From Haliotis cracherodii (taxonomy: Eukaryota), in assembly GCF_022045235.1 (NCBI RefSeq), contig NW_027266265.1:29450001-29514000 (forward strand): a stretch of 64,000 bases of DNA, given 5' to 3'. Positions 102-63,790 of the stretch are shown piece by piece (the first letter of the stretch is position 1; the number at the start of each line of letters is the position of its first letter). The notes beneath the pieces were generated by a model. The model did not search any database. It worked only from the letters and a program-made list of their open reading frames with translations, and was not told the DNA's origin. A program made the position numbers and the translations under genes.

Positions 102-3100
102 CTTGAAACGGCTCTTGGGCGTTGGTGTTGCTGTAGTCCACCAAGACGTCGTTGAAGGTTGACGTTGTGTTGTATTTGAATGAGGGGTGGAAATACACGT
201 TCTTCACTTGACGGACTTGTTCCTGCGGAACGTTATTGTACACTTCAGGGATGGAGATGTTGTATTCGCCCAAAACAACAATCATTCGATCCTGATATGT
301 TTCATCTGTGTCTCGTCTTCCAACACTAGAAACAGCAATAGATTAGCATAAGTAAACTACGTTTATAATGAACACGCCTATACCGAACTCACGGATATAA
401 CCTATTTTAAGTCCCGACCATTTGTTGTATATATGCTGTATATATGCTTATAACGAACTACGGTTATTACGAACTAAAATTAGTGCTCCTTTCAAGTTCG
501 TTATAACCGTAGTTTACTGTATAAGCAAGATAAGGATATTCCGTACATTACAAGAATGGTACATGTAGTTCTATTTTCAACATTTCTTTTACTTTCTCTA
601 TGTACAGTATGTGAGTGGCGGGTACTATTATCGGATATGCTTACACTTATCGCGAACACCTGGTGTCATCACTAGTTTCATTGACCCATATAATTTTCAC
701 AGATCGTTTGCCTTTTGCGCCCAAAGGAATCTGTTTCGGCAGATCATATATAAGTTTGGCTCACTTCTCTGAAGTTCATTTTACTGTGGGATGTTAATCA
801 ACTGAACAGGCATTACTAAGATACCTCGGTTGGTCAGGCTCGCTGACTTGGTTGATGCATGTCATCGTATCCCATTTGCGTTTTTTCGATGCCTGCTGTA
901 AAAGGCGGCTATGTTTGTCTTAAAAGTCGACTAACGGGATCGGGTGGTCAGGCTCGCTGACTTGGTTAATGCATGTCATAGATCCCTATTACGTGGATCG
1001 ATGCTCATGATATCGATCCCTGGATTGTCTGGTCCAGACTCGATTATTTACAGACCGCCGTCATATAGCTGGAATATTGCTGAATGCGGCGTTAAACAAC
1101 CAACCAACCAACCGAACCAACATACCTCATAACTGCTGCACAATCTGATAGAACCCAGTTCTTCTGTATAAGAACTCCGCCAGCATTATGAAGTGAGTTA
1201 GCCAGGGTCTTGGGAAGATTGGGTCCATTCATGCGTCGAAGGGATGCTTGCCATGGGGCTTGCTTTGGTTTGTCATCCTTGGAAAAGGCAAGTCGAGCAG
1301 TTGCGCCCCAAACACCACAGTTCCCCTCGTTCCCACAAGTGGTGGTCGCTATATAGAAGTACATTCTTCATTAAAGGTGCTCAATGTTCTTGCTGTTCAT
1401 CACTTGCAATACTTTTTCACTTACCTTTTACATGTTTGTCTGTTGAATATGTTTGTAATTGTGATATCACCTACAAGCTTGGGTTGACAGAAAATTGTAG
1501 ATTCTTTGTGGCATTTTATTTCCTTTCCTTTGTTTGTTTCATTTTTTGTTGTTTAACGCCGCACTCAGCAATATTCCAGCTATATGACAGCGGTCTGTAA
1601 TAATTCGAGACCAGACAATCCAGTGATGGACATCGATCCATACATTTGGGATACGATGACATGCATCAATCAATTGAGCGAGCCTGACCACCCGATCCCG
1701 TTAGTCGCCTCTAACGACAATATATTTTGTACGCGGTCAGTACGTGTTTAATTGGTTCAGATAGTCATGTACCAGTCCATGATACTCATGATACTATATT
1801 CGCTAAAAATTAATTATAATCTTTTATTACCAAAGACCTGGAAACTAGGAAACTAGGAAATGCAATTTTAGATAGGTATAGCCAAACAATGGGATTTGGG
1901 GTTATTATCGACAAAGAATAATTCTTTAAACCTTTTTGTCAAAAATTAAATATTCACCAACCGTCCAATCGATACAAATCTATACAAATGGAGTCTACTG
2001 AATATAAGTTAACAAAATATACATCAATCATCAAGTGTAATGGAGATTATTTAAATGAGCTTTGGTCAAGCTGTCATATTTTATTTGTATGAATACATTG
2101 TTGTGCAAAACCGTGAAAATAAACACATTCTGAAAATATTACAAACGGTTTTGTTGTTGATGTGAAACAGATCTAGTACACACTACGATGGATGTAATGA
2201 GCTCTGTTGCTTGGCGGATCGGGTGTCATCGTCACCGTCAAGGTACTGCCATCATTAATGGTCCCTATCTTATTCATGAGATACCTGAATTCCATTGAAA
2301 TAACACTAACTTTGATTTATGATGCAAATGATATTTACAAAACACTATATTTTTCACAAATAACATCACCCAAGTGATGAAAGTATGCTAAAGCAAGTAC
2401 TCACGTGTTCCAGTGCAACATTTGAATCCAGTTTGGCAAGCTGCATAATTGAAAAAAGTATCGCTCTGTTGTACAGTTCCGCTTGGACATCCGCCTTCAC
2501 GACAGACGCCATCACGATAAACAAAGCCACACACTGAAATGTATATACATATATATAGTGTATTGATGTTAAAGAAACCGGGATATTCATCATGACTATC
2601 TAATGTTGGAATACAAATTATATATTGTATTATGACGTATTTGATTATCTTATATGACAAAAGATATAATTATATTATGTTACAAAGGATACACTTGAGC
2701 ATCTTATGTTACAAAGTACATAATTTATTATCTATAATTTCAAACTAAGGAAGTACTTCATTACGTTAGTTTACAAAAGACGTTCTTGATTATCTTATGT
2801 TACAAAGGACATAATTGATTATCTAATGTTACAAAGGAAGAACATGATTACGTTTTTGGTACAAATGACGTACTTGATTATCTTATGTTACAAAGGAAGG
2901 ACTAGATTATGTAATGTTTCAAAGGAAGTACAGTAAACTACGATTTTAACGAACTCAAAAGGACTACTAATTTTAGTTCGTTATAACCGTATTTCGTTAT
3001 ACGCATAGATACAGCACATAAACACATTTTATTATATCCGTGAGTTGGTTATAATCGTGTTCGTTATAAACGTATTTCACTGTACTTGATTAAGTTATGT

Positions 3101-4739
3101 TACAAATGACGTTCTTGATTATCTTCTGTTACAGAAGAAGTACTTGATTACCCTAGTTTACAAAGGACGTACTTGGTTATGTAATGTTACAAAGGACATA
3201 ATTGATTATCTCATTTGACAAAGGATAATAAATGATACATGTTGGTTCGGATCCATGATAAATCGTTATTAACCATGGTCTGTCATGGTCGTGTCCTTGA
3301 TTGATTAAGAATTAAATACACTCAGGTTATTTTTATGATATAAAAACTTGTACATTTGGGATCATACAGATTTAAGATGTCCACAAGGCGCGCTGCTTTC
3401 TTAAGCGTCATGTGGTTCTTTCAAAGCAGTGTGTGCTTAACGGGTGGGCCTCATTCACAGACATCACGTTCTTACACACAGGGTTGTTGCTTACTGATGC
3501 GAGAAGGTACATACATATGCTCAATGCATGTAGAAGGATGCTGATATTGTCATGTATATTCGCAATACAAAAACACAGTAAACGACATTCTCTTTGAAAG
3601 TTCAAGCAGCTGACCTATAATGTATCGTGCTTATCGACAAGGATTTGACTGTATAGCTACTTCCTTGTATATTTTATTCAAGGGTAAGCTAGAGCAGTTG
3701 CTATCCTTTACATTACTTTATTTTTAAGCTTACTTCAGTTTCTAGATTGGGTACATTCTTCTTTCAATGGTATATGAATGGTATATCTTTTTTTCAAAGT
3801 TAACCTAACAGGTAATTCAGGTTTGAACATGAACTGTTGTTTACGAGCTTTTCAAATGAACTGAAATTCTTAGATCTATTTCAATCAGGGTTGCATATGT
3901 TTTGCAATGACGTGTCTTCAAAACTCATGTAAAAATCCCAAATCCTGAAGCAAAATCAAGGGACCAGATTGATTAATGTTAAGTCACTGCACGTGGTATT
4001 CTGAACGAATTTCATCTATGTTTTGTACTGCTCGTTATAATTTGCGACATCGCTCCAACAATGTTGACAGTCGCATAAATATATTCCTCGCCTCGCAGTA
4101 TGACACTGTTATTGCCATCGATTTGAGCCAACGGACACATTTATATAAAAATAAATGTGTTCGGATATTAGGGGAATGCGAGCTTATTATATAACACCAT
4201 AGGGCGTCATGGGGGAGATAATTTGTTGGAAAGCAACGATGTCGACCTCACCATTTGGAAGTTATTTGTAAACAAAGAACATAGTTGCTTACTTTCCACA
4301 CCACGGTACAATAGATACAAGAACTCCATCGCGAATAGATGTACACGTCGTGTACCCGCTTAACTCTACACCCTGACCTCACCGGAAGATCATATTTGTT
4401 AACAAATAATGAACGTGACAAAACATTTACTCAATGTTACATTAATTATCATATTTCGGTAATGTAAAATATTAACATGAAATAGTCCATAAAACAACTG
4501 TGACAATGATTTAAGAGGATTGCATGGGACCCCGAAGCGGAACAACCTTCAAAATTGGACGCGTCAAACATCAAATCTAAGTGTATGAATAGAAAGGATT
4601 CAATAGAAAAGAGTCACATGCTATTTTTTAAAATCTGTTCCTTGGTAATATTGAAATATGTTCATATCTCACCAGTAAAATCTACTGCGAAGGTTCCGTG
4701 TACGGCCAAGGCAAGTGTTATAAGTTTGATCGCCGCCAT
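102..4739 (-). CDS. SPH-0: secreted clip/beta-defensin-like six-Cys module plus non-catalytic trypsin-like (S1A) domain; 3' part runs off the window start
   Basis: Minus-strand exons 4673-4739 (signal MAAIKLITLALAVHGTFAVDFT), 2405-2533 (VCGFVYRDGVCREGGCPSGTVQQSDTFFNYAACQTGFKCC), 1126-1348 (CG..AR|LAFS..APWQASL..HNAGGVLIQKNWVLSDCAAV) and 102-325 (IVVLGEYN..EQVRQVKNVYFHPSF). All junctions are GT-AG with compatible phases 1,1,2. Trypsin motifs PWQASL, GGVLI..WVL, VLGEYN and HP are present, but TAAHC is replaced by SDCAAV. Confidence 0.85.
351..519. mobile_element. TA-flanked MITE (Tc1/mariner-pogo type)
   Basis: Terminal inverted repeats (c)agtaaactacg.ttataa.gaac / gttcgttataaccgtagtttactg with TA on both sides. 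Confidence 0.8.
826..1120 (+). mobile_element. SINE-like family A (partial copy plus 5'-truncated copy)
   Basis: gcgactaacgggatcgggtggtcaggctcgctgacttgg..gctggaatattgc..gcggcgttaaa + (CAAC)n tail; about ten copies in the window. Confidence 0.8.
1543..1720 (-). mobile_element. SINE-like family A
   Basis: Reverse complement of the family A 3' half. Confidence 0.8.
2590..3240. repeat. Degenerate 30-bp minisatellite
   Basis: Unit approximately tgttacaaaggacgtacttgattatctta; lies in SPH-0 intron 1. Confidence 0.8.
2931..3082. mobile_element. Same MITE inserted into a minisatellite
   Basis: Splits one repeat unit as aaaggaagTA[MITE]TActtgatt, duplicating TA. Confidence 0.8.
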
Positions 4740-4786
4740 CTTCTTTCCCACTTGCCAAACCGAGGCGGACTATCTGTCAAAATGCG

Positions 4787-4793
4787 TTATATA
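4787..4793 (-). promoter_or_regulatory. TATA box of SPH-0
   Basis: TATATAA on the minus strand about 50 bp upstream of the ATG at 4739. Confidence 0.55.
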
Positions 4794-8928: not shown

Positions 8929-11900
8929 ATGAAATATCTGCTACTACTGGCGATGTGTGTGTACGTTGTCGGGGCCAGAGCCAGAGACAGAAGCTTAAAC
9001 TTCAAACAACGGACATTTCTGATGGCACTCGATGAAAGGAAGCTGACCAGGGACCTCCGATCGTGTTGGTTGGACAGCACTGGTCATTGCTGTTCCAACC
9101 ACATCGCCGGCTGCCGTTACTACAGAAGATACCAAAAGAAATACAGGTCCAAGAACAGGTCAAGCAAAACACGTGAGTATGGAGCGTTGTGTGGACAGAC
9201 ACGGACCAAAATCTAAGAATTGTTTGTTTGTTGTTTAACGCCGCACACAATAAGACAATCCAGTTATTGACATCATGAGCATCAATTTACGCAATTGGGA
9301 TACGATGACATGCATCAACCAAGTCAGCGAGCCTGACCACCCGATCCCGTTGGTGTCATCCTACGACAAGCATAGCCGCCTCCTTGGGTTGTTGAAGACC
9401 ACCTCTACCCCAGATCTTCAAGGGGCCGATAACTGAATACCGGCAAGGGAATGAATGTTATTTTATGTCTCAGTCATCAATATTCCAGCTTTATCACGGT
9501 GGCATCTGGACCATCTGGGATTGTCGACCAGTGAATGATTGCACGTTTAACAACCCAGGGTATGATGGCCCACAATCAGCCAGGTCACACATTGTCATGG
9601 ATTATTGCCCGTATTTTCAGTCAATGGTTTTCCTAGTCCAGGGTCGTTGCAATTTCTCGTAACATCAATCACCTGTATGTCTGTTCCATACTCGATTATT
9701 AACATAGGTGGACATGTTTTAACAAAGTTTACAAAAAACAGACGAACATACGTATCGTCTGATCCACATCATTAGTAGTGATATAGAACTTTGTTACAGT
9801 AACAAAAATGTTCTGATGTATAGAACTTTACCTGATCAGTTAGATCAAGCCTGCTGGTACAGTATTTATTTTCCCCCGTCAAATTTGGAAGCATTGGTAC
9901 ATATTTCAACTGGCTGGAGAAGCAACTTAACATTATATATGACGTTGGCATAAGTTTGAGTGAAACATGTGAACACAGTATTTTTCGCTACTGTAATTGA
10001 CTGTTTGGGTTTTGAGAGTTGTTTGGTTCAATAACTAACGCGTTCATGTTTCGTTTCAGGAAATAACATCTTCTTTTTCAATACTATGCCTTATTATCCT
10101 GGCAACTACTGGTACCATTCTTGCAACGTACAGTGTCTCTGTACCTCATACCACGCATCGTGTTCACATGCTACGACTGCTGCCGCTACTACAACCACAA
10201 CAACAACGACTACTACAAGTACAACCACCACTACTACAACAACGACCACAACGACAACCACCACACCAACTACAACTACAACCACAACGACTACTACCAC
10301 CACTACAACAACAACGGCTGCAGCTACGACAGCTGCGACTACAACGGCTGCGACTACGACGTCTGCGACCACTACATCTGCTACAACAACATCTGCTACA
10401 ACAACATCTGCTACAACAACATCTGCAACTACAACATCTGCAACTACAACATCTGCAACTACAACATCTGCAACTACAACATCTGCAACTACACCAACGA
10501 CATCCACTACTCCTACGACATCAACAACGGCAACCACATCCACTACGCCAACCACATCAACCACAGCGACGACGGTGGCAACAGCCGTGAGAACAAGATG
10601 TACGTACACTGTATACTTTCAATCCTATAGTTAAAGCTCAATGTCAAATGAAAGCATTAAACACTGACCCAGTGATTCACCTCTCTAATGTACAAAGTAG
10701 GTTCTTTCGGTCCTGCCAGGGTCTGCTTTCGTGGATTACAGAATTATCCGGATAATGAGCCACGATCTTCAGTATGGGTTTCATCAAAGGTATTAAACTC
10801 TGAACCGCTGTGGCAAGTCCTTGGGCTTAAAGCAGCGTTGAAGACAACCTTTCAATAGAGGTGCCAGTTTTCTAGAATACATTTTTGGTTGCTTATTGTC
10901 TATTCATTTTCATTCTTAGACTGTCCACGGGGAGTAACAACCGTGTCCAACATTGTCAGGATCATGAACGGACGACCCGTGAACAACTGCACAACATATC
11001 CCGGTGTTGTCACTCTAAAATCACCAAGAGGCGTCACATTGTGTTCTGGTATAGTCACATCAAGCACTACAGTCTCAATCCCCAACAACTGTGCCCAGCT
11101 TCTCATTGAACCGTAAGTGATAAACACATCTACATCTCTTTGAAAAACTCTCATATGTATCTGAAATAATGTCCTTTTATGCCTGTATCACAAACAGCTT
11201 TAGGCACCGTTAAATGCTTAGATTATGTATGACAAGATCAGCAAATAACCAATTCCATACAGCAACTGTTCTGTCAGCTTAAATTGTAGGCCGGACATTT
11301 TCTTCAATAGTACCAAGAGCAAAACGACCAGGAAAAGAAAATATAATCAATAAATTCAGTACATGAAAATCGGTCAGGAAATCACAGCTTCATCTAAAAT
11401 CACAATAATGAATACTTGTACCCATTTGTTTATACTACCGAACAGGCAATAATCTATGGAAACATTTCTTGGCCAGAATCGTCCAAATAATATGTAATCA
11501 GTTTGGCGCATCATGAAAGATTATTTCTACTAGTTATATAGTATTTTGCATTTGGCTCTTGTGATCCTGCACTACAGATCTATGTTCAACTTATGCATAC
11601 CTTCACTGTGCAGTATGCTGGGGTGTCCGTATGTTCTACCTAAATGTCACCTCGTGACATCGACATCCTGATTAGAATACTAGGTTTTCAGCAACCCATG
11701 CTTGCCGTAAAAGTCGACTATCCTTGTTCTAAGAGGCAACTAACGAGATCGTGTTCCACACTCGATTATTTACAGACCGCCGTCATGTAGCTAAGATATT
11801 TCTAATGGTGGCTTTAAACAACAAACAAACCAAACAATTATGCAGTATGCACATCTTACATGATATCTCATAGGCAGGTTTGCAAATGATGTACAAAGTA

Positions 11901-14060
11901 AGTATCCAACCTGTTTTAATGACAATGAATACATACCTCATAGACCCATGAAGAGCCGGGGTAGAATAGGTCTTCAGCAACTCATGTCTTGTCGTAAAAG
12001 GCGACTATTCTTGTCGTAAAAGGCAACTAACGGGATCGGGTGGTCAGGCTCGCTGATTTGGTTGATGCATGTCATCGTATCCCAATTGCGTTTTTTCGAT
12101 GCTCATAATGTCAGTCACTTGATTGTCTGGCCCAGACTCAGTTATTTGGAGACCGCCGTCATATAGCTGGGATATATAGTGCGGCGGTAAACAACAAACT
12201 AACAACAAAAGAAAGAAAAACATTGCAATGTCTCTGTTTCAGACTAGTGTTGACTGATCCATCAAGTGGACGCCCCTTAGAGAGAGTCCAAGCTCTAAGT
12301 GGTGAGTTCACGTGGAGTTTGCTTATGCTTTGGAAATACTGTGCTTATGATATAGACGGAACTGTATAATGGACTCTTGATGCCTTATGATTCAAGGAAA
12401 TATGTCTGTCGTTTAATTTCCAACTGAATCTCAATTAACGTCTTTAAGTGGAATTTAGAAGTTGGTGTGATGAACAAGGGATATAGTTCTATGGATATAC
12501 AACTTTATTGTATAATTGCAGTCATTGTAACAAGGTAGTTCTTTATCAATAGAACTATTCCTTGAATATCTCAATTATCTCTTTAACGACATGTGTAGTA
12601 ATGTCAAATTAGCACAAGAGTCTATCCCAAACTCTACGAGCGTGAGATCGTACATAAACTTTCGTTCAAAGAAACATTAAGCACTAGACGATTGACCATG
12701 TGTTTATGGTGTTGTGAGCATTATCATGACGTGGATGTTGTAAATTGGATATATATTCCTGTATTAGTTTTCTGAAGAGACTGCAATGCACCCAACTGTT
12801 ATTATTCAACACAGACTTGCTAGAGTCGTTGTGCTGAAATCGTCTTTGTTTGGACCCAGGGCCAGGATTGATGAATGACCAGTAATTATAACTCAAGCGC
12901 ATTGCTACCTTAAATGAAGTATGATTTTCCTTTTAAGAATCTCAGCTTGAAAGTCTACGTCCTGGTGGGCCCTATGAAATAACACTAAATGAGCCGCTGT
13001 CCGCCGACACCTGTCCTGGAATAGCGTGCACGTACGAGAACAGAATGCTGAACCAACTAGACATCAACAGCTGTGTTGTAGCCGCGGGTGGATACAACAG
13101 CAATAGTGGTATGTTGTATCTTTACAAGGGCGGAGTGAGTGAGTGTGTTGGATTTAACGTCGCTTTAACATAATTACAGTTATATCACGGCGTTTCAGCT
13201 TTGAGGAAACCCCAAAGAGGATCATTTGGTATTGTGGTTATACCCATGAGTAAGGACATAGAGTAAGGATCGGCGTATCCTTACATGGTTGAGGGACAGT
13301 AATGTCGGCGCTTGGACCACCAAGCCACCATCGCTTGTTGCAGTGATGGATCAAGATTGATATATGTCTCTCCTAATTACCAAGGAATTGCTTTATGTTT
13401 CCTGTAGAAATTTGTTATTTGTGTTTGAATGTTTTCAGGCAATGGGCCAGCCTCTTTCTCCTACATGAATGTGTCAAATCTGCAGCCTACAGAAGATTGC
13501 GCTGCTTTCATCAGGTCGTCTGACCAGTCAGTTCTCTTCAACCCTGCTATCGTGTATAACTGTTTCTTCGGCGCTGGCTCATCCACCTGTGCAGTGAGTT
13601 GTGATTAATATTTTAACGTCAACCTGATGTTATTTGATCGTCTCTCTCACGAAAATAGCAGACAATAATATGACAAAACATTGCATGTTAGCCTTGTTGA
13701 TATAAAGAAGATATATAAGAATTAACAAATGCACGTGTGGGGCAAGTAAGGTTGCAATGTGTTACGATATTGATTTTAGAGCTTGAAACGACTCGCACAA
13801 TGATGTGTTGTGTTTTCACACACAATACAGTTCTTTACGTCTCTATGTGGAGTTTATCTAAATATCATTATCTTTATTGTCAGGGTGACTCAGGCGGTGG
13901 TGTTATGTGTCCGCTGTCTTCTGGAGAGATGGTGGTGATTGGACAAGTGGAGAACATTCCGTGTGAAAGCATTGGTGTCATTGGACTGTACGACATCGGG
14001 CAGTCTGGAGAATCCCTCCGGGTGCTGAGGACCCGAAGGAAGGATATAGTGCTTGGTTGA
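8929..14060 (+). CDS. SPH-1: secreted Cys/Tyr-rich module + Thr mucin stalk + non-catalytic trypsin-like domain (512 aa)
   Basis: join(8929-9172,10060-10599,10920-11112,12243-12301,12938-13108,13439-13593,13884-14060) = 1539 nt, open, all GT-AG, phases 1,1,2,1,1,0. Signal MKYLLLLAMCVYVVGA; RDLR|SCWLDSTGHCC; VR|IMNG; CSGIVTSSTTVSIPNNC (His57 to Asn); GIAC; STCA-GDSGGGVMC; ends RRKDIVLG*. Confidence 0.9.
9220..9425 (-). mobile_element. SINE-like family A
   Basis: Reverse-complement match with an internal deletion. Confidence 0.75.
11685..12205 (+). mobile_element. Two SINE-like family A copies (11685-11830 deleted; 11942-12205 near full)
   Basis: cccatgaagagccggggtagaataggtcttcagcaac.. through gcggcggtaaacaacaaac. 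Confidence 0.8.
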
Positions 14061-14385: not shown

Positions 14386-14524
14386 NNNNNNNNNNNNNNN
14401 NNNNNNNNNNNNNNNNNNNNNNNNNNNNNNNNNNNNNNNNNNNNNNNNNNNNNNNNNNNNNNNNNNNNNNNNNNNNNNNNNNNNNNNNNNNNNNNNNNNN
14501 NNNNNNNNNNNNNNNNNNNNNNNN
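14386..14524. other. Assembly gap (N run)
   Basis: Run of n. Confidence 0.99.
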
Positions 14525-21100: not shown

Positions 21101-21270
21101 GGGCACCTTTGCTTTTGGCATGTAGTTTTATGTAGTGTTACACTGATTTTCATTTCCTCATTTAAAAAGTATGGTTTCGAATGTGACTCAAGTTCAAATA
21201 AGAGAATGAACTTAAAGTACATACCAATGTATTTTAAGAATAGCATGAATAAACTAACCTTTTCGTACTA

Positions 21271-47717: not shown

Positions 47718-47725
47718 TATAAATA
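47718..47725 (+). promoter_or_regulatory. TATA box of SPH-4
   Basis: TATAAATA 63 bp upstream of the ATG at 47781; identical at 63514-63521 before SPH-5. Confidence 0.6.
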
Positions 47726-47780
47726 CCCCGTCTCCCTCCTGTTTGAACGCCAGCGCCTTGACAGCTCCACACACAGCAGA

Positions 47781-50700: not shown

Positions 50701-52685
50701 CGTCGTAATTGTACCCTTGTTCGACGAGCCCCATTGGACGGTGGGACAGCCTACTGGTTAAAAGACAGGGTTTGATTCCCCACATGGGTACAATGTCTGA
50801 AGCCATCTTCTAGCTACCAACTCACTCACTCACAAAGAAAAGACAGCACTAAAATGTCACATTGTCCTCACGGGTAGTTTCCTTCGTTCACCCAGCTCTG
50901 ATCTGGTTTCGGACACATTTTGAAAAAGCAGCCAATTCAACTGTATATTTTTCTATTCGTAGTGTTGTGGCTCAGGATGGAACCGTTATCGCAACAGGCA
51001 TCACAGGTAAGAGACAGGTCACTTCACAATGATGTGTGTTTAGGTTTTCGTTTAAACACATTTTATTCACATGAAAAGAACATGATTTATCGCAAGTACG
51101 CTGTTCCTCTCCCCAGTATTTATATACATGATGGGTTGTACTTTTGTACATGTTGTGGTAGAATTTAGAAGAAGGGGAACAAATATTTTGTTTAAAAATG
51201 TACGTCTTACCTATTTTACCATGGACAGAAATATAAAGTTCCGCATTTCCAGATTGTATCAACTCAATGTACAGGTATCCTTATCTTTGGAAATTTCAGC
51301 AACCGCAGGAGGAGTAGGTGGGCCTGTTGAAGTGACCTTACCTACAGCAGTGACGTCAAACAGCTGCCCCGGCATCGCCTGTGTCTATTCCAGCACTATG
51401 GCAAGCGACATCCTCCTGGATACCTGCAAGGTTGCTGCTGCAGGATTCTCTGATAATGCCGGTGAGCAGCGATCTCAGAAGTGTGGAAGATGCGTAGTGA
51501 CGCATGTGTAAAAGTGGGCGTCAATGATGCAAGAAACGATCTCGGAATTTTAGACAGTGGGGTGAAGTGAAATGGGGTATAACATCGTGTTCAAGATTAT
51601 TTCACTTGCATGCACGTGTGCGTGTGGCTGTTTGTACTAGTCCGGATGTATGCCTGTGTTGTGCTGCTAGCACTCTGAGATAGAATGCCGCAGTTTAAGA
51701 TTGATTGCTTAGGCACATTATACTGATTCCTTGTTTTATCCCCACGGGTAAATATTTTGTAAGTTAGAGCTTCACCTCTGGAAGAAAGAGCCCCAAACTA
51801 TCTGGAAGACACAACACTTCATTGTCCCAAGTGATTATTTGTTTTAAACAATCTCATCTCCCCAACCCTCCAATCCCACCTACCCTGGAATATCATATGA
51901 TCAACCTCGCACGTGTCTTCTGCATCACAGGTACTTCAACTCCTGCCTTCGAGTACCTGGATATCCCCAGTCTGCAGCCAACGGACACGTGTCAAGCACT
52001 TCTTTCAGCCAGCCCCACTTCTGCTGTCTTTGACTTCACGAACACTGCCATCACATATAACTGCTTCATTAGTCCCAGTGGCTCTACATGTGCGGTATGT
52101 ATATTGTTTCCCTTATTTCCAGGCTGAATGGTTTCATAGTGAAGCCTCTATCTCGAAATGTTACTACCTTCTACACCTAAAACCCTTTAATTCTCATCGA
52201 AGGGGAGGGGCGGTTGGGTAGATCATTTGTTATTTTAAATGCGTAGTGTATTTGTATTTGTGTCTTTTGTTTACGTTACCACACATGTGACATCGGTGAC
52301 ATCCCGTTCACTCACACATCTGTGCCAGAAGACTATGAATTTGTTAGAGTAGGCTATAAGAACTCAATTGCAATAACAAGCATTGGCACGAAAGGTAAAG
52401 TTCCAATCAATTCTGAATACCAGGATTTGAATATAAAGGTCCGAACAAACTCTGCGATGCAATACGCTCAAAAATTCAACGTTAATACATAATTAGTGGT
52501 GTCGTTACTTCCAGGGCGACTTCGGTGGACCAATATCTTGCAGTCTAACGACTGGAGAACAGGTGGTTATTGGGCAGATCGAGAATGGTGACTGCACGGC
52601 CGGTTCTGCTGTAGGATTCTACAACCTTGAAGCAGCGAGTGTTCGTGTTCTTGCAACAAGCAGGGACCAAATCCAGCTCGGATAA
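47781..52685 (+). CDS. SPH-4: divergent paralog with Ser195 to Phe and a 21-nt microexon (408 aa)
   Basis: join(47781-47994,49131-49151,49488-49742,50017-50212,50963-51006,51300-51461,51931-52094,52515-52685) = 1227 nt, open, GT-AG. Signal MNCLPILVCLSLAVMVSS; RHYRPR..DYSGDCCRNGNNNC; TR|LLNG; CTGVVTSGTTLSIPSNC; STCA-GDFGGPISC; ends RDQIQLG*. Confidence 0.88.
48740..49005 (+). mobile_element. SINE-like family A, full length
   Basis: Matches the family consensus end to end. Further partial copies at about 21880-22035, 41838-41905 and 49800-49990. Confidence 0.82.
50385..50505 (-). mobile_element. Short remnant of the RLE-type element
   Basis: ggaggtaccgaaccttaggcac..ggggagtcg..gacatttc matches 36924-37000. 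Confidence 0.55.
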
Positions 52686-55570
52686 AAATATTGTTTTATT
52701 AATTTGTCTTGTGTTCCATGTTAAATAAACAGCTGAACATTTACAGTACCATGTTGTAATTCTAACTATGTGCATGTATATCCAATGGCATACTTTGTAT
52801 ACTTTGAGGATTCCTAGAGCAAAAGCTTTTGGCAATGAAACTGGAAATAATCAAATTGACAAAAGATGCTTTATTCGGTCAAAGTCATATCGTTAGGTGG
52901 TAGGATATTTATATAAGTTCAGTCTATTTTATAAACAACAGTAATTTCGTGTTAAATAGTCCTCAATCATGAAATAATACGTCCCTATGGACGTCCCTCG
53001 GTCTTAGCTGGTAGTTTAAACCGTTGGTGCCATATGCAGAAAGGAGATACCTTTGTGACGTATTTAGTTCACGTGTTTAGTTCATGTCTTCTTGCCTATG
53101 AGTATCGTTCGACGATTTCCTTTAATGTCGAACCCCTAAAATGACTCAAGTCAAACTTTCACCACTTTGGAAATACCCACGACTACCAAAGGTTATAATA
53201 GGGACGGAAGCTGGAAAGCAACACTGCACCGCTATTTAATCATATGAAGTTGATATATTCGTCAAGATACAAAACCCCAATTTTAGTTCTTATTTCGCGT
53301 TTTATTGTTGAAATGTACAAGAAAACACAATGTGACAACATATGACAAGACTCAAAAGTCATTCAGGATTATTACAATAATGTAGCGACTTTCATGTACG
53401 CGTTTGTGGCTGTTTGTTCCAGTCGGCCATATGTCGATTTTATAGTACCAGCCCAGTGAGATCTCATGCGGCGTCACGACGCACTTTCTTTCATCACCGC
53501 ATATTTTCGCTATTAGGTCTACATTGTCGTGTTGTCACATTCGCGCATGGTGGCACTGCTTATTTCACAATGCCAACCAAGACTGATCTATACCAATAGA
53601 TGAATAAGTCAAGGGTTTAAATTCAGTCACTTCATCGAAAAAAATAGATTGTCCCAAAACATGCTTGAAAAAATGTATTAATGCCTTAGACTGGAAAGAA
53701 AAGAAATTGTTCCAAGGTGGTTTTTACCAAAAACAACAGTTTAGGCTTACAGTTTTAATATATTTCTGGTTTTGCAGCAGTAATTGAAAAAGTATTTAGT
53801 CTCCAAACAAAACCCCATATAGGTTTCTGTCACGCTCACGGTACGCAACACTGCACTGTGCATTCATCAATTTTAGTGTGAGAGTAAGTGAGTTCAACAA
53901 TTAAATTACCACGGCACAGCTTGATGCAGAAGGAGAGCCCGAAGTGATGCAAATCTTAGATTTAAACACATTGGTAAAACCCACAAGCAGAGGAAAGGCG
54001 CTGGGGTGCCAACCTATGCCTAGTGGACACAGCTCTGCACAGCAAATACACCGTCCAGGATGACTGGCACAACCGTACCCGTCCTTCAACGATGTGATTA
54101 GTTATTGGCGACCTGAAATAAATTAAACAGAAAAAAGTTTATTTCTTGCTGTCAAAACACGTTGGTATTTAAAACCGACCCCGAAAAGAGAGATTTGGTT
54201 TCATTCCGAGGGAAGTAACCCACATTGCCATCGATACTTATGTTTTAGAATCATTGGAGACCACTGGAGTTTGTAAAGGAATATAACCATTTCTGTGCAT
54301 GCGTAGATATATTCACTTATTACACATGTACAATATTAATAGAAAAGGGACACAATGCGAATTTAATGAATACTTGCATATTCGCACATTTTAATGCATT
54401 GCTAAATATAACAGATGGGACATTTGGTCAAAATGTCGAGATGTCTCGCTTTTTATCACTTTTAGTTTGTGTTTGTGAGGGCACGAACACGGCAATGTCC
54501 CTACTAGGATTCAATATAATTCTACATTGACCTCGGTAGTGAAGATTGAGCTAATAATGGAGATTCTGAAATAAACAGTTTTGATTCCAATGACAGAGAG
54601 ACTTTGGCACTATTTGCCAGTACAAATAGATCCGTTAGAATCTTCTTTACCAGTGGGTGATACCATACTGATCAGTATCTGCACAATTCCTCTAACCATC
54701 CACCACAAATCAAAAGAGGAATTATCGCCACCTTAGCCCGACGTGCCGTCAACATCTGTTCCACGCCACAACACCTACAAACTGAACTCAACCACCTCCG
54801 CCATGTCTTCACTAACTTCAACAATTATCCTACCAGCCTAGTTGAACTAACAATCAACAGCATCCTCAGCCCCAGAGAGCGGCCTCCACGACAACACACA
54901 GCCCCGTTTGTCATCAGTCTTCCCTACATAGGAACAGCCAGCCACCAGATCCGCAGACTGCTCAAACACCACGCCAACATTGATACACTATTCCAGAGAG
55001 ACAGGACAATCCAGAACATCCTCAGTGCCAATGGCAAGCCCCCTACATCAAAGAAAGAAGACCCAGCTGGTGCCGTATATCACATACAATGTGACTGTGG
55101 CGACTCCTATGTAGGAGAAACATCCAGGCCCCTACCCATTCGAATAAAAGAACACAAGACCTCAGTACAAAAAAAATGACTCAAAATCAGCCATCTCCGA
55201 CCACACTCAAACCCACCCCGACCACAACATCCAGTGGAACAACATCAAGATCCTGGCCAACAATCAATCAGACTACAAAATCAGGAAACTCCTAGAAGCC
55301 ATCTACATCAAAAGGATCCAGCCAGCAATGAACAGAGATCAAGGCTATTACATCCCGCCTGCTTACCATCACCTAATTGCTAAATCCCTATGTCCATCCA
55401 ATTAATCCACTGGCTTCCATCATCTCTATCATTCTGCTTGCTGACTATGTGTTCATTAGTCATCAACTGGCTTCCAATTATCTTAATCAGCTCTCTGTGT
55501 CCATCAATCAATTAACTGTATAAACATTGATGTTAATAAGTATATATACCTATGTTGTTTAGCACGATCC

Positions 55571-55786
55571 GGCTCCTTTAGTTCCCTCCTCCACCCACCT
55601 CGGCATTTATTCCAAATTTAAAAATTTCAAAAAAACAATATAAGCAACCCCTAAAAGCCCCCTCTTGGGTTGCACACACCACTTTCACCCTTCTCGGAAT
55701 ACACTAAATGGTCCGGCCAGGCCCGTGTGCGAAATACGCTGTAGTCGGAAAGCGCACGTTAAATCTTCTATATCAGTCAGTCAGTC
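55571..55786 (+). mobile_element. Short 3'-end copy of a related I-group LINE with a (TCAG)n tail
   Basis: Homologous to the LINE 3'UTR at 59781-59980; perfect 10-bp TSD AGCACGATCC at 55561-55570 and 55787-55796. Confidence 0.85.
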
Positions 55787-55796
55787 AGCACGATCC

Positions 55797-58700
55797 CAAA
55801 ACCAACACCCAAAACCTAAATAACCTCATGCATAGTCAAAACTCACCAAAAGCTAGCATGAAATCCTTCTACAAAGTAGCTTTCAATCTAAAATTAACCG
55901 ATCTTCCCTTCTTCCTCTTTAACCTCCATCTAAAAGAACTCACCGAATAAAATAAAAACTAAAAACTAAATCACCAATCACCCGAACCCAATATTCGAAG
56001 GACTAAATATTTTTCAGTGGAACGCCAACGGACTCACCTCCCACGGCCATGAACTAAAAACTAAATTTAAACTAAATAAAGGCCCTCACATTGCTTGTAT
56101 ACAGGAAACCAAATTCTCAAAAAAATCCAAATTCACACTACCTAACTACAACTCAGTTAGAACTGACAGAGCTAAACCGAAAACAAGAAGAGCCGCAGGA
56201 GGACTAATCATATTTATCAGGGAAGATATAAATTACGAAGAATAAAAATAGACACGCCAAACCTAGAAGCCAACGGCATTAAAATCACATTAAATAACCG
56301 AAACATAAACATCATCAATATTTACCACTGGGCGGAACAAAAAGTCCAACCTGAGGATCTAAACAAACTACTCCAAATAAGCGATAAATCTACTATATTC
56401 CTAGGAGACTTTAACGCTCACCATCCTACATGGAGCATAGATGATAAAATAGATAATCATGGCAAATTAATCTCCGAATGGATAGAAACAAACGACCTAG
56501 TACTCCTTAATAGCAACCAACCCACGAGGTACGATAAGATAAACCAAAAAATGTCGGCTATCGATCTAACCATATGCACCGCAGATCTAGCCCAAAGTAC
56601 TCAATGGGAAGTGCACGACGTCCCGCTAGGTAGTGACCACTTCCCCATAAACATAACCATAGGAAATACAAACGTACCAATCCAAACAGAAAACCAAGAA
56701 CCAAAATTGCATTACAATAAAGCTAACTGGGACCAATTCCAAGATATCTGCAACGAAGCTAACTTAAACGAAATAGAAAATAAGGATCCAGAAACCTATT
56801 GTAAAAACCTAACAGACTATATAATAAACGCAGCCAAAACCTCCATCCCCTTCAAAACATCTAAGACAGGCAAACCTACGGTACCATGGTGGAATGAGGA
56901 AATAGAACAGACTAGACGAAAACGTAAATCAGCCTTCAATAAAGCAAAACGCGACTACAAATATTTAAACATAGCCCACGAACTAAACCACCAGGTTCAA
57001 AAACTAGTCCAAATAGCCAAAAGTAGAGACTGGAAAAAATTCTGCGAAGGTATAAATAACCGTACAGATGCCAGAATGGTCTGGCGCAAAATCCACGCCA
57101 TCAGAGGCTTAAAACGACAGAAAAAAAACCCTAACATTGACAACTCAACCAACCCCGCCCAAAAGCAAATAATCTCGCCAACCACTTTTCGGCCGTTAGC
57201 AGTAACACCAACTTCAGTAAAAAATTCCAAGATAAACTTAAAACAGAAAACAAACCCACAAAAGAACCAAACAATAACAATCTAGAAATAAATCAACCCT
57301 ACACAATGGAGGAGCTCCTCTACGTAATCCAAAACGGGCACAGCCCCAATTTTAGACCTAACTTCTTACCAAATAGTTAAAAAACTCCCCCTAAAACTAC
57401 TCAAACTATACAATCTCATCTACCTAAACGGACAGGTTCCTACTCCCTGGAAACAGGCCCTAGTCATACCAATCCCTAAACCTAATAAACCAGCTAATCA
57501 AGCTAACTCATATAGACCAATATCCCTAACTTCAAACTTATGTAAAGTAATGGAATCAATGGCTAAAAATAGATTACAACATTACTTAACCCAAAATAAC
57601 ATCATAAACCCAGATCAAAGCGGTTTCACTCCTGGCCGCTCAACCCTAGATAACCTCGCCCGACTAGAACAAGATATTAAGACAGGACAGCTAAATAAAC
57701 AATATACCACAGGCATCTTCTTAGACTTCTCTAAAGCTTTCGACATGGTATGGCACGATGGGCTAATACAAAAACTTAAAAAAATAGGACTCAAAGGTCA
57801 GATAATAAACTACATCCAGGACTTCCTAAACAATCGTAAAATAACCGTGGGTATAGACCAAACTCTATCGGACCAATGTCCCCTAGAAAATGGCACTCCA
57901 CAGGGCAGTATCCTCAGCCCCACCCTCTTCAATATAATGATAAACGATCTATTCGAGGGCCTATCCCCTAAAGTAAACACATCAAAATTCGCGGATGATG
58001 GAGCCATCTGGATCCGCACTAAAAGCATGAACATGGTCCAAAATTTACTCCAAAAATCTCTTAATAAAATACAACATTGGGCTGACAAATGGGGCTTCTC
58101 CCTTAACTCAGAAAAAACAACAGGAATAGTATTCAAACATAAAAACATGAAACCCGCCTCCCCAATCCTCCAGCTAAACAATCAAACAATCAAATTTCAA
58201 AAACAAACCAAATTCTTAGGACTTATTTTCGATGAACATCTCACCGGGGATGCTCACATCCAAAACCTAACAACTAAATGCAGTAAAGACCTAAACACCC
58301 TAAGATGCCTAACTGGCTCTAACTGGGGAGCATCCAAAGATACCATACCCTCCTCTCTCTCTACATATCACTAATTAGATCAAAACTAGACTACGGCTGC
58401 GCCATATACAACACCCTAAACAACTCTCTATCTAAAAAACTTGACTCAATACAATATCAGGCTCTCAAACTAATTACACGCACCCAACATGGCACCTCCT
58501 ACACCTCACTTCAGGCCTTAACAGGAGATATGCCACTAAGTCTACGCAGGGAACAGCTAAGCTTAAATTTCTGGGCCGCGTCCCAATCAAACCCTCTCAT
58601 CCAAAACATCAGCCCTAAAAACCAAGCTCTAGCTCGTAAACACCCCTTACTTATCCCAATATCCCAAAGAATAACAAACTACCTAAATGAACACCAAATT

Positions 58701-59978
58701 AAAAATCTTAAACAAAACTGCAAACAATCAAATATCTTCACCCCTAAACTTAAAATACCCAAAATAGACACAACACTAGCTAGCCAAATAAATAAACAAA
58801 CCGACCCAAACATAGCTAAAACTACCATACTAGCATACATACACGAAAATTGGCCAAATTGGTGTCACATTTACACGGACGGATCCTCAGATCCGACCTC
58901 CAAACACACGGGTTTCGGAGTTCATACCACACAACCAACTAAAACCACACAATCCTTCCGACTCCCAAATAACCAATCAATATTCACGGCAGAACTAATG
59001 GGCATGGCCTCAGCCCTCCATAATCAAGAATCCAAAAACCACAAAAAAATCCTAATACTTACCGGCTCCCTAAGTGGACTGCAAGCCCTCCAAAACAAAA
59101 ATACCAAAAACCGACCTAAATTAATAAATCAAATACTTAAAAACTCCAACGACCTAACTAAGGCAGGCAAACAAATAACCTTCTTGTGGATCCCCGCCCA
59201 CGTAGGAATATACGGTAATGAAAACGCCGATAAAGCAGCTAAACTATCCCTCAAAATCCCAGAAATAAGCTTAAACTTACCCATCTCAAAATCAGAAATT
59301 AAAAGTGTAAACAAGCAAAAAATCACCAAAAAATGGCATAACCTATATCTAAACTCAAATAGCCAAATCAAAAAAGTGCTCAGCAAACCACTAACCAAAC
59401 CAAAAATTCTCCATCCATCAAAAAAAAATCGACAGAGTAATCACTAAACTCCAAACAGGACACACCAACCTAAATAACCACCTAAAATATTTTTTAAAAA
59501 CACACTACAGGTAACTGCCCACATTGCAAACAACTAGAAACCCCAGAACACGCACTCATCCACTGCACACACTACCGCACACATCGAACCGCATTACAAA
59601 CCACCCTCAATCTAAACAAGGCTCTCACTCTAGAAGCAATACTAAACCCACAAAATAAACTAGAAAACTTCAAGGCCTTAGGCGTATTCTTAATCAAAAC
59701 GGAACTAATAAAACGCATCTAAAAACATAATAACCTACCAAATCAAAATCACATAAACAAACAAACATCCACCATACCCAGCTCCCTTAGTTCTCCTCCC
59801 CAACCCCATCGGCATCTATTCCAAATCTCAAAATTCCCAAATTATATATGAGCAACCCCTAAAGCCCCCTCTTAGGGTTGCACAGACCACCTTCGCCCCT
59901 TTCGGAAACACATTAAATGGCCTGGCAGGGCCCGTGTGCGAAATACGCATCAGTCGGAAAGCGCACGTTAAATCTCCA

Positions 59979-60075: not shown

Positions 60076-60164
60076 CCAATTGTAATAAAGAAGTTGTTCA
60101 TCCATAGAACTCGTCTTACTTTATCACACCAACTTCTAATTGCCACTGAAAGAAGTCATGGTGT

Positions 60165-61675
60165 ACTAACACGTGGAGTTGTCTAGGTATTAGATATAGC
60201 TTCAGTGACAATGTTTAAGAAGGTCATGATCATTCATAAAACGATTAGCTTTCAAATTAGTACTGCAAAAGAAACTAAACGACAGCCTCATGATCACTGC
60301 CTTGGAAAATTGCTTTTGTAAATGAAACTATCCACAAAGGGAGATATAGCTTTAGATACGGTAGGAAAGAGATCAGTGCGACACAAATCACCATGAACTG
60401 ACCATGAACTGAAAAAAGGTCATTAAAGAGTGTCAGAAATGGGCAAATCCAACGCTGAGAACATACTCCTGGATTGAAGTATGTGTTACTTCCATCATTA
60501 AGAAGGCATAGACTATGCTTATCAAGTAATTCTTCTGTCACATTTCCTATATTTTTATGATCGGATGAACCCAATAGGATTTGTGACCATTCAAGTCTCC
60601 CATAATCAAAAACGGTTTGGGATGCTGGTCAATGAGATTATCCATATCCCTGAGCAGATGATGGATGTATATATAAGGAACACAGAGTTATTGTTGTAAT
60701 ATACAATGTTATACGCACTGCAACAGCCTGAAGGTATTTAGTGCAATAGGGCTTTGAGGAGATCCCTGTTTTACTGGTATATTTGTGCCACCATACGTCT
60801 TACCATAAGAAACACTTACAAACGAACTATATGTATCCTACTGATGTAAATCAAATAGCTGACCATCTCGTGTTTCCTGGAGACTAAACGCCACGACCTT
60901 CTTATCTTCGGCTAGAAGGTTCATTTCTTCAAAATTAGCTTTAATTCCTCGGCAGTTACATTGTATGATATTATGATTCATGGAGGGTGAACATGTGATC
61001 TACCTCTACCCACTTTCTTTTCAGAAGTGTGGCCATGTATATAACTTTTGGTGGGTTTTAGGGCAGTGACATAAGATATTTTAGTTGGTCCTGCAGAGGA
61101 ATTAGCAGGAACTTTCTTTCGTGCATCAATGTAGCCAATAGTTTGCTCAGACTTAACCCGTTACACAGCCGACTCAAATTCGAACACAGGACGCTCAGGG
61201 GAATATGCCATGTGTGCTTCTGTGCAGTGAGAACATTTGAGGGTAGCGAAGCCTTCAATTTTGAGCATGGCCAAACAGTTGGCATTTGAAGCAGTGGCTA
61301 GGACATGATTTTCACAAATCAATCCTCATAACTTCTTTGAGAGGCATTTAGAAAATGGAGTACTGAGTACTGAGTTGTTCATCCATAAATCATTTCCTTA
61401 CTTTAGTCAATCCTCATAGCAAAGCAACCTACCTGGAAGGTTAGGTGAAGCAAACGTGATCAAGAGATAAGTTTTGGAAGGTAAAATGTTCCCATCTTCC
61501 TTAAACGTGAAACGTTTTGCTTCAATAACACCTTGATCTCTTAGCTCAGAAACAATTTCATCAACTGAGAGGTCATTTCAACTACGATCACGATCACGGA
61601 TGATCCCCTTATTGAAGTTGAGTGATTTATGAGCATAACTTTCGATCTTGATATCTGCCAGTTTAGTTGATTCAA
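60165..61675 (-). mobile_element. Duplicate of the decayed I-group LINE remnant
   Basis: Near-identical to 44690-46215 within the duplicated block. Confidence 0.75.
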
Positions 61676-63513
61676 TTCAATTCGGTTTATTTCGTAAGTG
61701 TAGGCCATCGGCCCATAGTTACATTTGTATTACAATGGACGTGGTGTACACATATCTTATTGTTCTGACAATAATGTACTACGAAATGCCATCGCTTGAC
61801 AGATATAACATATAGCAAAACGTTTAATTACTTTACAATCAGTTTATGACATAATGATAATAATTTCTTTGATTTGTCGCCTATTCACAATATTCTTGTG
61901 GTAAGTGCTCCACCCGTGTTATAATCGGAGCAAACTAACAAAACAGGATACTCGTGTAGTTCATTCAAAAAGGGTAGCAGACTGTTTATGAGTTTTGCGC
62001 TCCACCAGCAGGGCGCCACACTTCAGTTTTGTAACATCAGACATTCCCTGCTTTAACTTTTATTGCTTCTTTCTAGTAGAAAGGGTAAACATGATGTTAA
62101 TTTGTGTTCTTCAGTGGCCTCAAGCACAATGGACTTGAGCCAAGTGTCTTTCTCGGAATATCACAAGCGAGCAAGTGTTTCATCATCGGAAAAGTTCACT
62201 TTCTGAATCAGTACTTTTTAAGATTTGTTTAAGGTGCCATGGTAATAAGAATATGTTTCAACAATCATGTTTACCGACCCCACGGAGCGCCTTTACTGGG
62301 GATGTTAAATGTCAGTGGATCTCCAGCAGACTAACACCAAGAGGATACAGGATAGATATATTCCAACAGTGTAATGTACTAGATTCGCCCATGAGCAACC
62401 GCCTTCTGGGCATCAGACTCGAGGCTATGTTAAATTTTGAAATTTCTCAAAATTTCTCAAAATTCAAGAAAAGAAAGAAAATGAAAAAAAAAATCAAAAC
62501 CACCTGAGTGAGTGAGTATGGTTTTATGACACATTCTACCCCGGATCCCAACATAGATAAACACAGCAATTAAAGCAATATGTCTCGTAAACTTCAACAC
62601 AGATACGTTAACGTTCAGAGCTGGTATCGTCGGTTATAATTGTAGTGTGAAAAGATAGGTGTTTTAAGTCGCATCATTGAAATCAGCTAATTGCAAGACC
62701 GACACATGGTGTTATGGTCCTTTTTATATTCAAAAAGAGAATAATTGCAAATGTCTCACGACTATTTATAGTCACAAAACTGAGGCGCGAAAGCAATAAT
62801 ACCTCTCAGTTGAGTTTATAATATGTTTAATTTTCAATTGAAAATATGTTAAGTTAGCGATATTTCATCTAAAAGAAATAAACTGGCGCTTAGTCAGCAC
62901 TCAAAGAATAATTGTTTTTTTCAAAATATAATTTGATTTAAAACTCTTAAATAACATATTGAAACATTCCATAACACAAAACTGCTGATGGGTATCTTAG
63001 ACATCTTTAAAACTCAATACATTTGCATTCTTTGGGCACAAATTTACATTTCAAACATTGTAGAGGTCAAGTGAGTACAAATTCATTTCTTACACAAGTC
63101 TTCATTGAACCAAATTATTTTAACACAAAATTACCGATCTACAGATTACTTTTTACAGACGGTTACAGGAATAAGTGATGGTTAAATACACATAATCAAA
63201 TTTAACAAAAGTTCTTTCAAATTTCAATTATATAAATAAATACTATTTTTGCCCCAAAGTTTGTTAAATGTTTCGAACCTTGAAATGCATGATTAAGCAT
63301 CCCCACTTGTGCTGTAGGAAATATTCTAGGCGTCGTATCTAGAGTGGAAACACACCTGTAAAGTCCATCTCTGTATGACAAACATTGGAATATTCTATGA
63401 TATCTACTTCGACAACAGCTGGTTCAACATCGAAAACAAACCCTGTAGTATTTGAACCACTGTTTAATTAGAACAAAATCCCACGGCAGTTCTTCCACCG
63501 AAATCCATCTCAG

Positions 63514-63521
63514 TATAAATA
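63514..63521 (+). promoter_or_regulatory. TATA box of SPH-5
   Basis: TATAAATA, copy of 47718-47725. Confidence 0.55.
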
Positions 63522-63576
63522 CCCCGTCTCCCTCCTGTTTGAACGCCAGAGCCTTGACAGCTCCACACACAGCAGA

Positions 63577-63790
63577 ATGAATTGCCTACCCATACTAGTC
63601 TGCCTATCACTGGCAGTGATGGTGAGTTGCGAATATCTCTCCATGAAGTACCAGACAGAGAATTATGAAAGTGCTGTAAAGGCTGAAAGTCAAGCTTCAC
63701 TGAGACACTTCAGGCCCCGCTACAGCTACGTCGACTACTCGGGAGACTGCTGCAGTAACAGTAACAACAACTGTGGATGGGCTCGATATT
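63577..63790 (+). CDS. SPH-5 exon 1 (recent duplicate of SPH-4; remainder beyond the window)
   Basis: 214-nt exon, same length and phase-1 donor (T|gtaagt) as SPH-4 exon 1: MNCLPILVCLSLAVMVSCEYLSMKYQTENYESAVKAESQASLRHFRPRYSYVDYSGDCCSNSNNNCGWARY. Confidence 0.85.

Follow-up and report, generated by a model that had tools for sequence, protein, structure and literature searches.

Predicted secreted S1 pseudo-proteases on threonine-rich stalks: a tandemly duplicating gene family in the abalone Haliotis cracherodii and other gastropods

Proteins that keep the fold of the S1 (chymotrypsin-like) serine proteases while giving up catalysis are recurrent inventions, with haptoglobin, HGF, the insect clip-domain homologs, and the SMIPPs of mites as examples; to our knowledge, almost nothing is known about S1 pseudo-proteases in mollusks. 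Here, we describe a family of this kind in a 64-kb stretch of eukaryotic DNA from a chromosome of Haliotis cracherodii (C2:29450001–29514000 of the 1.18-Gb assembly; G+C content 39.6%), which we call the window and to whose first letter all coordinates refer unless a chromosome position is given. The genes (g1 to g6) form an array on the plus strand, and each is predicted to encode a signal peptide, a Cys-rich head, a Thr-rich stalk, an activation-type cleavage site, and an S1 domain with a dead triad. The reading that we prefer, with moderate confidence and on the strength of sequence, is that of a gastropod family, growing by tandem duplication, of secreted S1 proteins that bind rather than catalyze, are switched by cleavage, and sit on a mucin stalk.

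The most instructive comparison is with the clip-domain serine protease homologs of arthropods, such as PPAF-II of Holotrichia (PDB 2b9l), masquerade, and CLIPA. These proteins function through limited proteolysis and binding rather than through catalysis, and they typically have Ser195 replaced by Gly while His and Asp are kept. Like the abalone family, they are secreted and have a disulfide-knotted module at the N-terminus that a linker connects to a dead S1 domain, and their genes often lie in tandem; the likeness to them that was drawn in the initial annotation of the window is reasonable at this level of design. One should keep in mind, however, that the loss within the triad runs the opposite way in abalone, where every copy has lost His57 and some retain Ser195 (the arthropod side of this comparison is given from general knowledge), that no clip domain is detectable with Pfam CLIP, that the linker is a long Thr stalk, and that the phylum is a different one, with orthology not shown.

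Other described systems share part of the design. The SMIPP-S proteins of the scabies mite (PDB 3h7t and 3h7o, structural Z 13.7 and 12.8, respectively) are also a lineage-specific, multi-copy set of secreted S1 proteins with mutated triads, but they are single-domain proteins with no Cys head, stalk, or conserved activation-type site, and they belong to complement evasion and a parasitic lifestyle. In vertebrates, the pseudo-proteases haptoglobin, HGF/MSP, protein Z, and azurocidin use the S1 fold as a ligand-binding module, and several of them need cleavage of the Arg15 type; haptoglobin (Z 14.3), protein Z (Z 13.5), and HGF (Z 13.0–13.4) were found among the structural matches of the abalone family model. 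They differ in having CCP, kringle, or Gla/EGF domains at the N-terminus, no mucin stalk, and no tandem family. In Drosophila Stubble, as in type II transmembrane serine proteases, a Ser/Thr-rich or modular stem connects an N-terminal module with a C-terminal S1 domain, and there is an interchain disulfide that tethers the parts after activation cleavage, but those proteins are membrane-anchored and active, whereas the abalone proteins have a predicted cleavable signal peptide and a dead triad. A secreted S1 pseudo-protease is thus a known kind of protein; the architecture of a head and a mucin-like stalk is new.

In the case of g2, the structure of the gene can be read from RNA. The transcript runs on the plus strand from 24223 to 29407 or beyond, with a coding sequence at 24273–29333 that encodes 462 amino acids, and it consists of seven exons (24223–24483, 25481–25816, 26405–26600, 27129–27187, 27639–27800, 28230–28384, and 29064–29407 or beyond). 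All six junctions (24483/25481, 25816/26405, 26600/27129, 27187/27639, 27800/28230, and 28384/29064) are of the GT..AG type and were read directly in spliced contigs from three runs belonging to three studies, and a single RNA contig of 1520 nt spans the seven exons. In a DNA run, the introns are covered and no joints are seen; the joined form, therefore, is RNA and not a retrocopy. The spliced product is identical, letter for letter, to RefSeq XP_071086317.1, an "uncharacterized protein." The initial annotation had made its reading depend on spliced transcripts, and g2 provides them.

The predicted proteins share one layout. An N-terminal hydrophobic signal peptide is apparent by inspection, as is the lack of any transmembrane segment. 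It is followed by the head, which contains 8–10 Cys in the pattern C-x8-CC-x6-C in exon 1 and C-x3-C-x-C-x7-C at the start of exon 2; g2 has eight, in a 4+4 arrangement divided between the two exons. Neither Pfam (exons 1 and 2 and the full-length g2 product, E up to 1) nor the ESM Atlas (no usable match for residues 18–108) gave a relative of the head, and this portion of the structure model is unreliable. Next comes the stalk, a low-complexity segment of 49–140 residues, 61–71% of them Thr, which in its length, its composition, and its position after the predicted signal peptide has the character of a mucin-type stalk. The longest, the 140-residue stalk of g1, is built in part from a 15-bp tandem repeat at 10306–10493.

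An Arg-Phe/Tyr-Cys-Pro junction is conserved at the boundary between exons 2 and 3, and the activation-type site consists of Arg followed, across the predicted cut, by Ile/Leu-Leu/Met-Gly/Asn-Gly. The S1 domain comprises ~220 residues, with 12 Cys in each of the five complete Haliotis models; this is the normal size, and the description of the domain as "compact" in the initial annotation should be dropped. All paralogs end in one unit of ~11 residues that closes in [IV]-x-L-G with a C-terminal Gly. A basic tail of 33 residues, found in g2 and g3, holds three extra copies of the short x-[IV]-x-L-G unit (29232–29330 and 39778–39876, respectively). Gly followed by basic residues is reminiscent of amidation and processing signals, which is pure speculation.

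The catalytic positions are best considered one by one. At position 57, the six abalone copies and the orthologs of H. rubra, H. rufescens, and H. asinina all have Asn, the two Patella species have Ser, and Babylonia has Phe; since the spacing between Cys42 and Cys58 is exactly 16 residues, the alignment at this position is fixed. Residue 195 is Ala in g2, Ser in g1 and g3, Phe in g4 and g5, Thr in g6, Gly in Patella, and Ala in Babylonia, and residue 102 can be Glu, Thr, Ala, or Asp, so that the His57-Asp102-Ser195 triad of an active S1 protease is found in no member. Wherever the sequence covers them, Arg15, a hydrophobic residue 16, Gly193, Asp194, the V-I/V-G strand at 214–216, and the eight scaffold Cys that we tabulated are kept. 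In g2, the Arg-Ile pair lies at 26443–26448, Asn57 at 26575–26577, and Ala195 at 29070–29072; the corresponding positions in g1 are 10958–10963, 11087–11089 (Asn57), and 13890–13892 (Ser195), and in g4, Asn57 and Phe195 lie at 50184–50186 and 52521–52523. Judged from sequence, the pattern is one of a dead triad with the zymogen-activation and cleft-forming residues preserved, and the initial description of the plus-strand proteins as secreted, trypsin-fold proteins with a Cys module and no His57 stands, with Asn57 in all copies.

One might ask whether such proteins are still enzymes that work by a non-canonical mechanism, for example, with Ser195 of g1 and g3 paired with another base. The retention of Ser195 in these two copies and of Gly193 and Asp194 in all copies would fit this, but every member has Asn, Ser, or Phe in place of His57, most have Ala, Phe, Thr, or Gly at position 195, position 102 is variable, and purifying selection is equal on the copies that have no Ser195. 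We consider residual enzyme activity very improbable, and a non-catalytic binding module is probably the better description of the domain.

The assignment to the S1 fold rests on several kinds of search, in which the g2 product and its database orthologs were used at whole length and g1 and g3 to g6 were covered as exons or in scripts. When the g2 product was compared with the PDB using phmmer, trypsins came out on top and almost all matches were S1 proteases (best E 1e-3, with the GDSGGP region aligned); the few weak non-protease matches could be traced to the Thr stalk. In the PDB, a profile made from seven family sequences matched S1 proteases exclusively (best E 3.3e-5), with the pseudo-protease PPAF-II at 1.5e-4. 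The Pfam Trypsin model scored 21.2 bits on the H. rubra ortholog, against a cut-off of 20.6. Exon by exon, the plus-strand genes gave nearly nothing in Pfam, and g1 exon 7 alone matched Trypsin (E 0.02). The sequence match to S1 is, therefore, marginal for single sequences and clear at the profile level.

Structure comparison points the same way. An ESM Atlas feature search returned 30 matches, which the summary of the tool assigns to Trypsin-family clusters (best score 0.97), and Foldseek gave at least 500 significant matches, with S1 proteases in all 50 among the matches listed. VIA-align, which is independent of Foldseek, was run against 48,161 chains and reached Z 14.8, with 105 chains at Z ≥8 and the S1 fold in all of the matches listed. 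Residues 205–415 of the g2 model could be superposed on residues 23–235 of factor Xa with Z 17.9 and 3.4 Å over 197 residues. Cys 42, 58, 136, 191, 201, and 220 occupy aligned positions in 11 of 11 family sequences, and the 168/182 Cys pair was aligned to trypsin for g2 alone. The initial annotation would have been withdrawn had the C-terminal domains modeled as something other than a chymotrypsin fold; Foldseek, VIA-align, and the profiles all point to that fold.

It is from the dead triad with its preserved activation and cleft residues that we derive a proposed mechanism. The stalk would be O-glycosylated in the mucin manner and would place the S1 domain inside an extracellular gel or matrix or extend it away from one. 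The conserved bond between Arg and Ile, Leu, or Met would be cut by a protease of the trypsin or furin kind, and the new N-terminus, much as when a zymogen is activated, would pair with Asp194, which is invariant, while a Cys just upstream of the cleavage site may keep the head tethered by a disulfide. The cleft formed by Gly193, Asp194, and the V-I/V-G strand at 214–216 could then bind a ligand, be it a peptide, a protease, an inhibitor, or a microbial surface, with no cutting. The paralogs vary mainly in stalk length, in residue 195, and in nearby loops, which suggests that their ligands have diversified.

The stalk invites another explanation, namely that the proteins are structural glycoproteins of mucus or matrix in which the Thr stalk does the work as a gel, lubricant, or adhesive, and the S1 domain and Cys head are only end-caps or cross-linking knobs with no switch or specific ligand. 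The stalks are indeed long, Thr-rich, and variable in length, with a tandem repeat contributing to that of g1; an ortholog was named by RefSeq after a Ser/Thr-rich wall protein of yeast; and RNA contig depth was high in one run, although this is a weak measure. What is invariant from Patella to Haliotis, however, is Arg15, the hydrophobic residue 16, Gly193-Asp194, and the 214–216 strand, whereas the sequence of the stalk and the head are not conserved. In addition, a text-only search of a limpet pedal-mucus proteome paper turned up no mention of such a protein. We regard a purely structural role as possible but unlikely, and favor the cleavage-switched binding protein.

How far that binding protein resembles the arthropod system in its use is a matter for greater caution. 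Tentatively, and with rather low expectation, the family could be an independent gastropod counterpart of the clip-domain logic, that is, a set of cascade-cleaved, non-enzymatic recognition or adaptor factors that act at mucosal surfaces or in hemolymph, with duplication and variation of residue 195 and the loops diversifying what they bind. If true, this would mean a previously unrecognized proteolytic signaling or defense pathway in mollusks. The term "effector system," which was attached to the cluster at the outset, is unsupported, since nothing points to partner genes or to a target. The roles in mucus, shell, adhesive, or immunity that were suggested along with it are likewise unsupported, and in the literature searched, no paper or proteome mentions the proteins. 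The finding is a gene family and not a demonstrated system, and dead proteases that are restricted to a lineage are no surprise as such. What it offers is a cleanly defined family, with one architecture in limpets, abalone, and a whelk, consistent loss of His57 and retention of the activation hardware, together with the concrete hypothesis of a binding protein that is carried on a mucin stalk and activated by cleavage. Duplication of the family is ongoing in abalone, a genus that is farmed and to which the endangered black abalone belongs.

The taxonomic range was assessed by profile and by word-based searches. A profile of exon 7, run against 1.84 billion representative proteins, retrieved, apart from three bacterial proteins that are dealt with below, only the g2 product, a protein of Patella caerulea, and fragmentary sequences of H. 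rubra and H. asinina. Word-based searches added a "cell wall protein DAN4-like" of H. rufescens, LOC126816046 of Patella vulgata, and LOC143291877 of Babylonia areolata; the name "DAN4-like" is due to the run of Thr. The Babylonia protein matched the family profile with 98.7% probability (E 2e-16) and with its parts in the same order, and the layout is common to Haliotis, Patella, and Babylonia. The family thus spans Patellogastropoda, Vetigastropoda, and Caenogastropoda and is gastropod-wide rather than abalone-specific. This range is a lower bound because words from the Thr run partly swamped the word searches, in which 8000 candidates were scored. The initial annotation had called the family a lineage-specific molluscan one; its relatives are molluscan, but the three gastropod subclasses call for a correction of "lineage-specific."

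A profile as short as that of exon 7 can gain score from repeats, as it did in bacterial proteins. Three bacterial secreted repeat proteins (1355–1537 amino acids, 5–9 repeats) were rejected, given that only a YVLTSGE-LVIEQV-like motif in each repeat matched the profile, and a Thr-run protein from the database (P0012) was likewise rejected as a relative. None of the relatives found in the databases has been characterized: all are "uncharacterized," "hypothetical," or misnamed "DAN4-like," in agreement with the initial view that the proteins match no named family. Literature searches by accession, gene symbol, and short motifs, and on abalone or limpet mucus and protease topics, yielded nothing relevant to the family.

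Genes whose catalytic residues are lost might also be decaying duplicates (transcribed pseudogenes) of an ordinary protease gene, and here the ratio of non-synonymous to synonymous substitution rates (dN/dS), which we calculated by the method of Nei and Gojobori, is informative. It is 0.22 for g2/g3 (dS 0.11) and 0.15 for g1/g2, where dS is saturated, and these values point to purifying selection on the genes, as far as comparison of their sequences can tell. The exons of g2 and g3 are far closer than their introns, which are ~80% identical where they can be aligned. Five copies have complete, open spliced frames and every exon found of the sixth is open; the tabulated scaffold Cys are conserved, along with the 12 domain Cys of each complete Haliotis model; and the same layout and loss of His57 recur in Patella and Babylonia. 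Decay could draw on the lost catalytic residues and on the g4/g5 pair, where dN/dS is 0.63 and rises to 1.25 in the N-terminal part on very few changes, but it is largely refuted and we give it hardly any credence. The genes are functional and the array that they form continues to grow; a dN/dS near 1, which would have refuted the initial annotation, is not seen in the informative pairs (0.15–0.22).

Several points weigh against the reading of a conserved family of cleavage-switched binding proteins, and the reader should have them together. Residue 102 is not conserved, and the alignment there is approximate. Pfam Trypsin was undetected in the g2 product and in two further family proteins from the database (P0009 and P0011). 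Both AlphaFold models are of low confidence, with a mean predicted local distance difference test score of 50–51 (60–79 in the S1 domain of g2), because the alignment is shallow, with seven sequences only. The dN/dS of 0.63 for g4/g5 (dS 0.035) rests on just 30 substitutions. Among the family copies, the RNA evidence is for g2 only. Finally, it is from sequence that we infer that the proteins are secreted, glycosylated, and cleaved, that a disulfide links their domains, and that they bind a ligand.

The history of the family can be followed in a tree of the S1 domains, in which Patella stands apart from Haliotis, g2 and g3 form a well-supported group, and g4 and g5 form another that includes the orthologs of H. 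rubra and H. rufescens. A long branch separates the g1 domain from the others, and the tree puts g6 and the sequence of H. asinina close to the g4/g5 group without resolving their placement. From this topology, the main split came before speciation within Haliotis, and two of the duplications are recent. With dS of 0.11 and 0.035, g2/g3 and g4/g5 are the recent duplicates, in line with the earlier suggestion that the array is still expanding.

In the whole genome, the family is found in six places, all on the plus strand, at C2:29.459–29.532 Mb, as determined with the profiles of exons 7 and 3, each searched against the entire assembly. The array spans ~75 kb and extends past the window, which holds 4.2 of the six members, g5 being partly and g6 wholly outside. 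A tandem cluster had been recognized from the start, with five plus-strand members, a number that now becomes six. Paralogous exon sets on the plus strand were recognized by six-frame inspection and self-comparison of the window, and the structure of g2 was then transferred to the paralogs under the constraints of GT..AG, phase, and similarity. Four complete genes (g1 to g4) lie in the window, as first annotated, each with a single open spliced frame; all have seven exons with GT..AG introns, and no model with the eight exons then allowed for was found.

The first gene, g1 (8929–14060), has an open frame of 510 amino acids by homology to g2, with exons at 8929–9172, 10060–10599, 10920–11112, 12243–12311, 12954–13108, 13439–13593, and 13884–14060. 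The next after g2 is g3 (34462–39879; 485 amino acids, also homology-based), with exons at 34462–34672, 35161–35565, 36037–36232, 37450–37508, 38199–38360, 38783–38937, and 39610–39879. Its aligned exons and flanks are 82–93% identical to those of g2 in DNA, and the proteins differ mainly in the length of the stalk. The start codon of g3 is provisional: an in-frame ATG is present at 34423, 13 codons 5' of the g2-homologous start at 34462, and the signal peptide comes after the downstream Met.

The fourth gene, g4 (47781–52685), is a homology-based model with an open frame of 401 amino acids and exons at 47781–47994, 49488–49742, 50017–50212, 50963–51006, 51300–51461, 51931–52094, and 52515–52685. 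Exon 4, of 44 nt, is the least certain of these, and the small exon 4 of both g4 and g5 was placed by homology alone. As the initial annotation had it, exon 1 of g5 (63577–63790) is in the window; the other six exons, just past its end, complete an open model of 405 amino acids that is 95–100% identical to g4 in each aligned exon segment. About 12 kb beyond g5 lies g6.

Exon 1 of g5 is located inside a segmental duplication of ~3.5 kb (44682–48152 and 60157–63951; 89–93% identical), which, for g4 and g5 alike, reaches from the upstream region through exon 1 into the beginning of intron 1. The introns of the two genes are 88–97% identical and the exons of the S1 domain 97–99.6% (DNA). This pattern fits either recent duplication under constraint or gene conversion.

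On the minus strand, a divergently oriented gene has been regarded as a second architecture of the same system. Its three exons in the window, as predicted from sequence, are a six-Cys module exon at ~2531–2406, an exon for the N-terminal part of an S1 domain at ~1348–1127 (Pfam Trypsin, E 0.002), and a middle exon at ~325–102, whose best donor is at 102, the coordinate at which the initial annotation starts, and pairs with a strong acceptor outside the window. The gene continues upstream of the window, where an exon in the flank scores 33 bits with Pfam Trypsin and matches TMPRSS2 at 2e-8. The sequence around position 57 is WVLSDCAA, Cys42 and Cys58 are both gone, the motif around position 195 reads GDFGGP, and residue 102 is ambiguous. 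The Cys module has a clip-like spacing by eye and no match in Pfam or the PDB.

The part of the earlier claim that holds is that this gene encodes an S1 pseudo-protease without His57; for the signal-peptide exon, there is only a candidate, with a Met at 4739. The gene is a singleton in the genome, with its nearest relatives 314 kb away and on another chromosome, and it has no specific similarity to the array, which rules it out as a second architecture of the same family. Its sequence is best explained if the gene encodes an S1 pseudo-protease of independent origin and is a neighbor of the array by chance.

Two assembly gaps (N runs at 14386–14524 and 15653–15812) fall in the spacer between g1 and g2. 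The stop codon of g1 ends at 14060, 326 bp ahead of the first gap, and from the end of the second gap it is 8.4 kb to the first transcribed base of g2; no exon model touches or spans either gap, and their continuity is thus irrelevant to all of the models. A dispersed repeat with copies that are 76–85% identical is found at 15429–15652, 22054–22275, 39207–39419, and 40399–40598, and the second gap was probably caused by the copy that ends exactly at its edge (15653).

A transposon insertion (54661–59719, plus strand, detected with Pfam), which is not part of the family, separates g4 from the duplicated 5' region of g5. A GIY-YIG fragment (Penelope-like; 54661–55176) precedes the domains of a non-long terminal repeat retrotransposon, namely Exo_endo_phos_2 (56176–57282), RVT_1 (57328–58371), and RNase_H (58323–59444), which lie in three different broken frames.

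A second dispersed repeat, of ~180–270 bp, occurs in both orientations at 894–1121, 1545–1720, 9253–9424, 11942–12205, 21898–22042, 25124–25396, and 48740–49007, with several copies within introns of family genes. Read depth at 25035–25388 is 1e5–3e6 in RNA-like and DNA runs alike, and the repeat is, therefore, a very high-copy element resembling a short interspersed element. Rfam, searched over the window, gave no transfer RNA and no other family, and the other long open reading frames of the window match no Pfam family. There are intergenic minisatellites at 30336–31287 (a 27/54-bp unit in ~35 copies, between g2 and g3), 20810–21101 (39 bp, 7.5 copies), 2637–2932 (29 bp, 10 copies), and 42401–42526 (27 bp, 4 copies), and these give rise to long spurious open reading frames on both strands.

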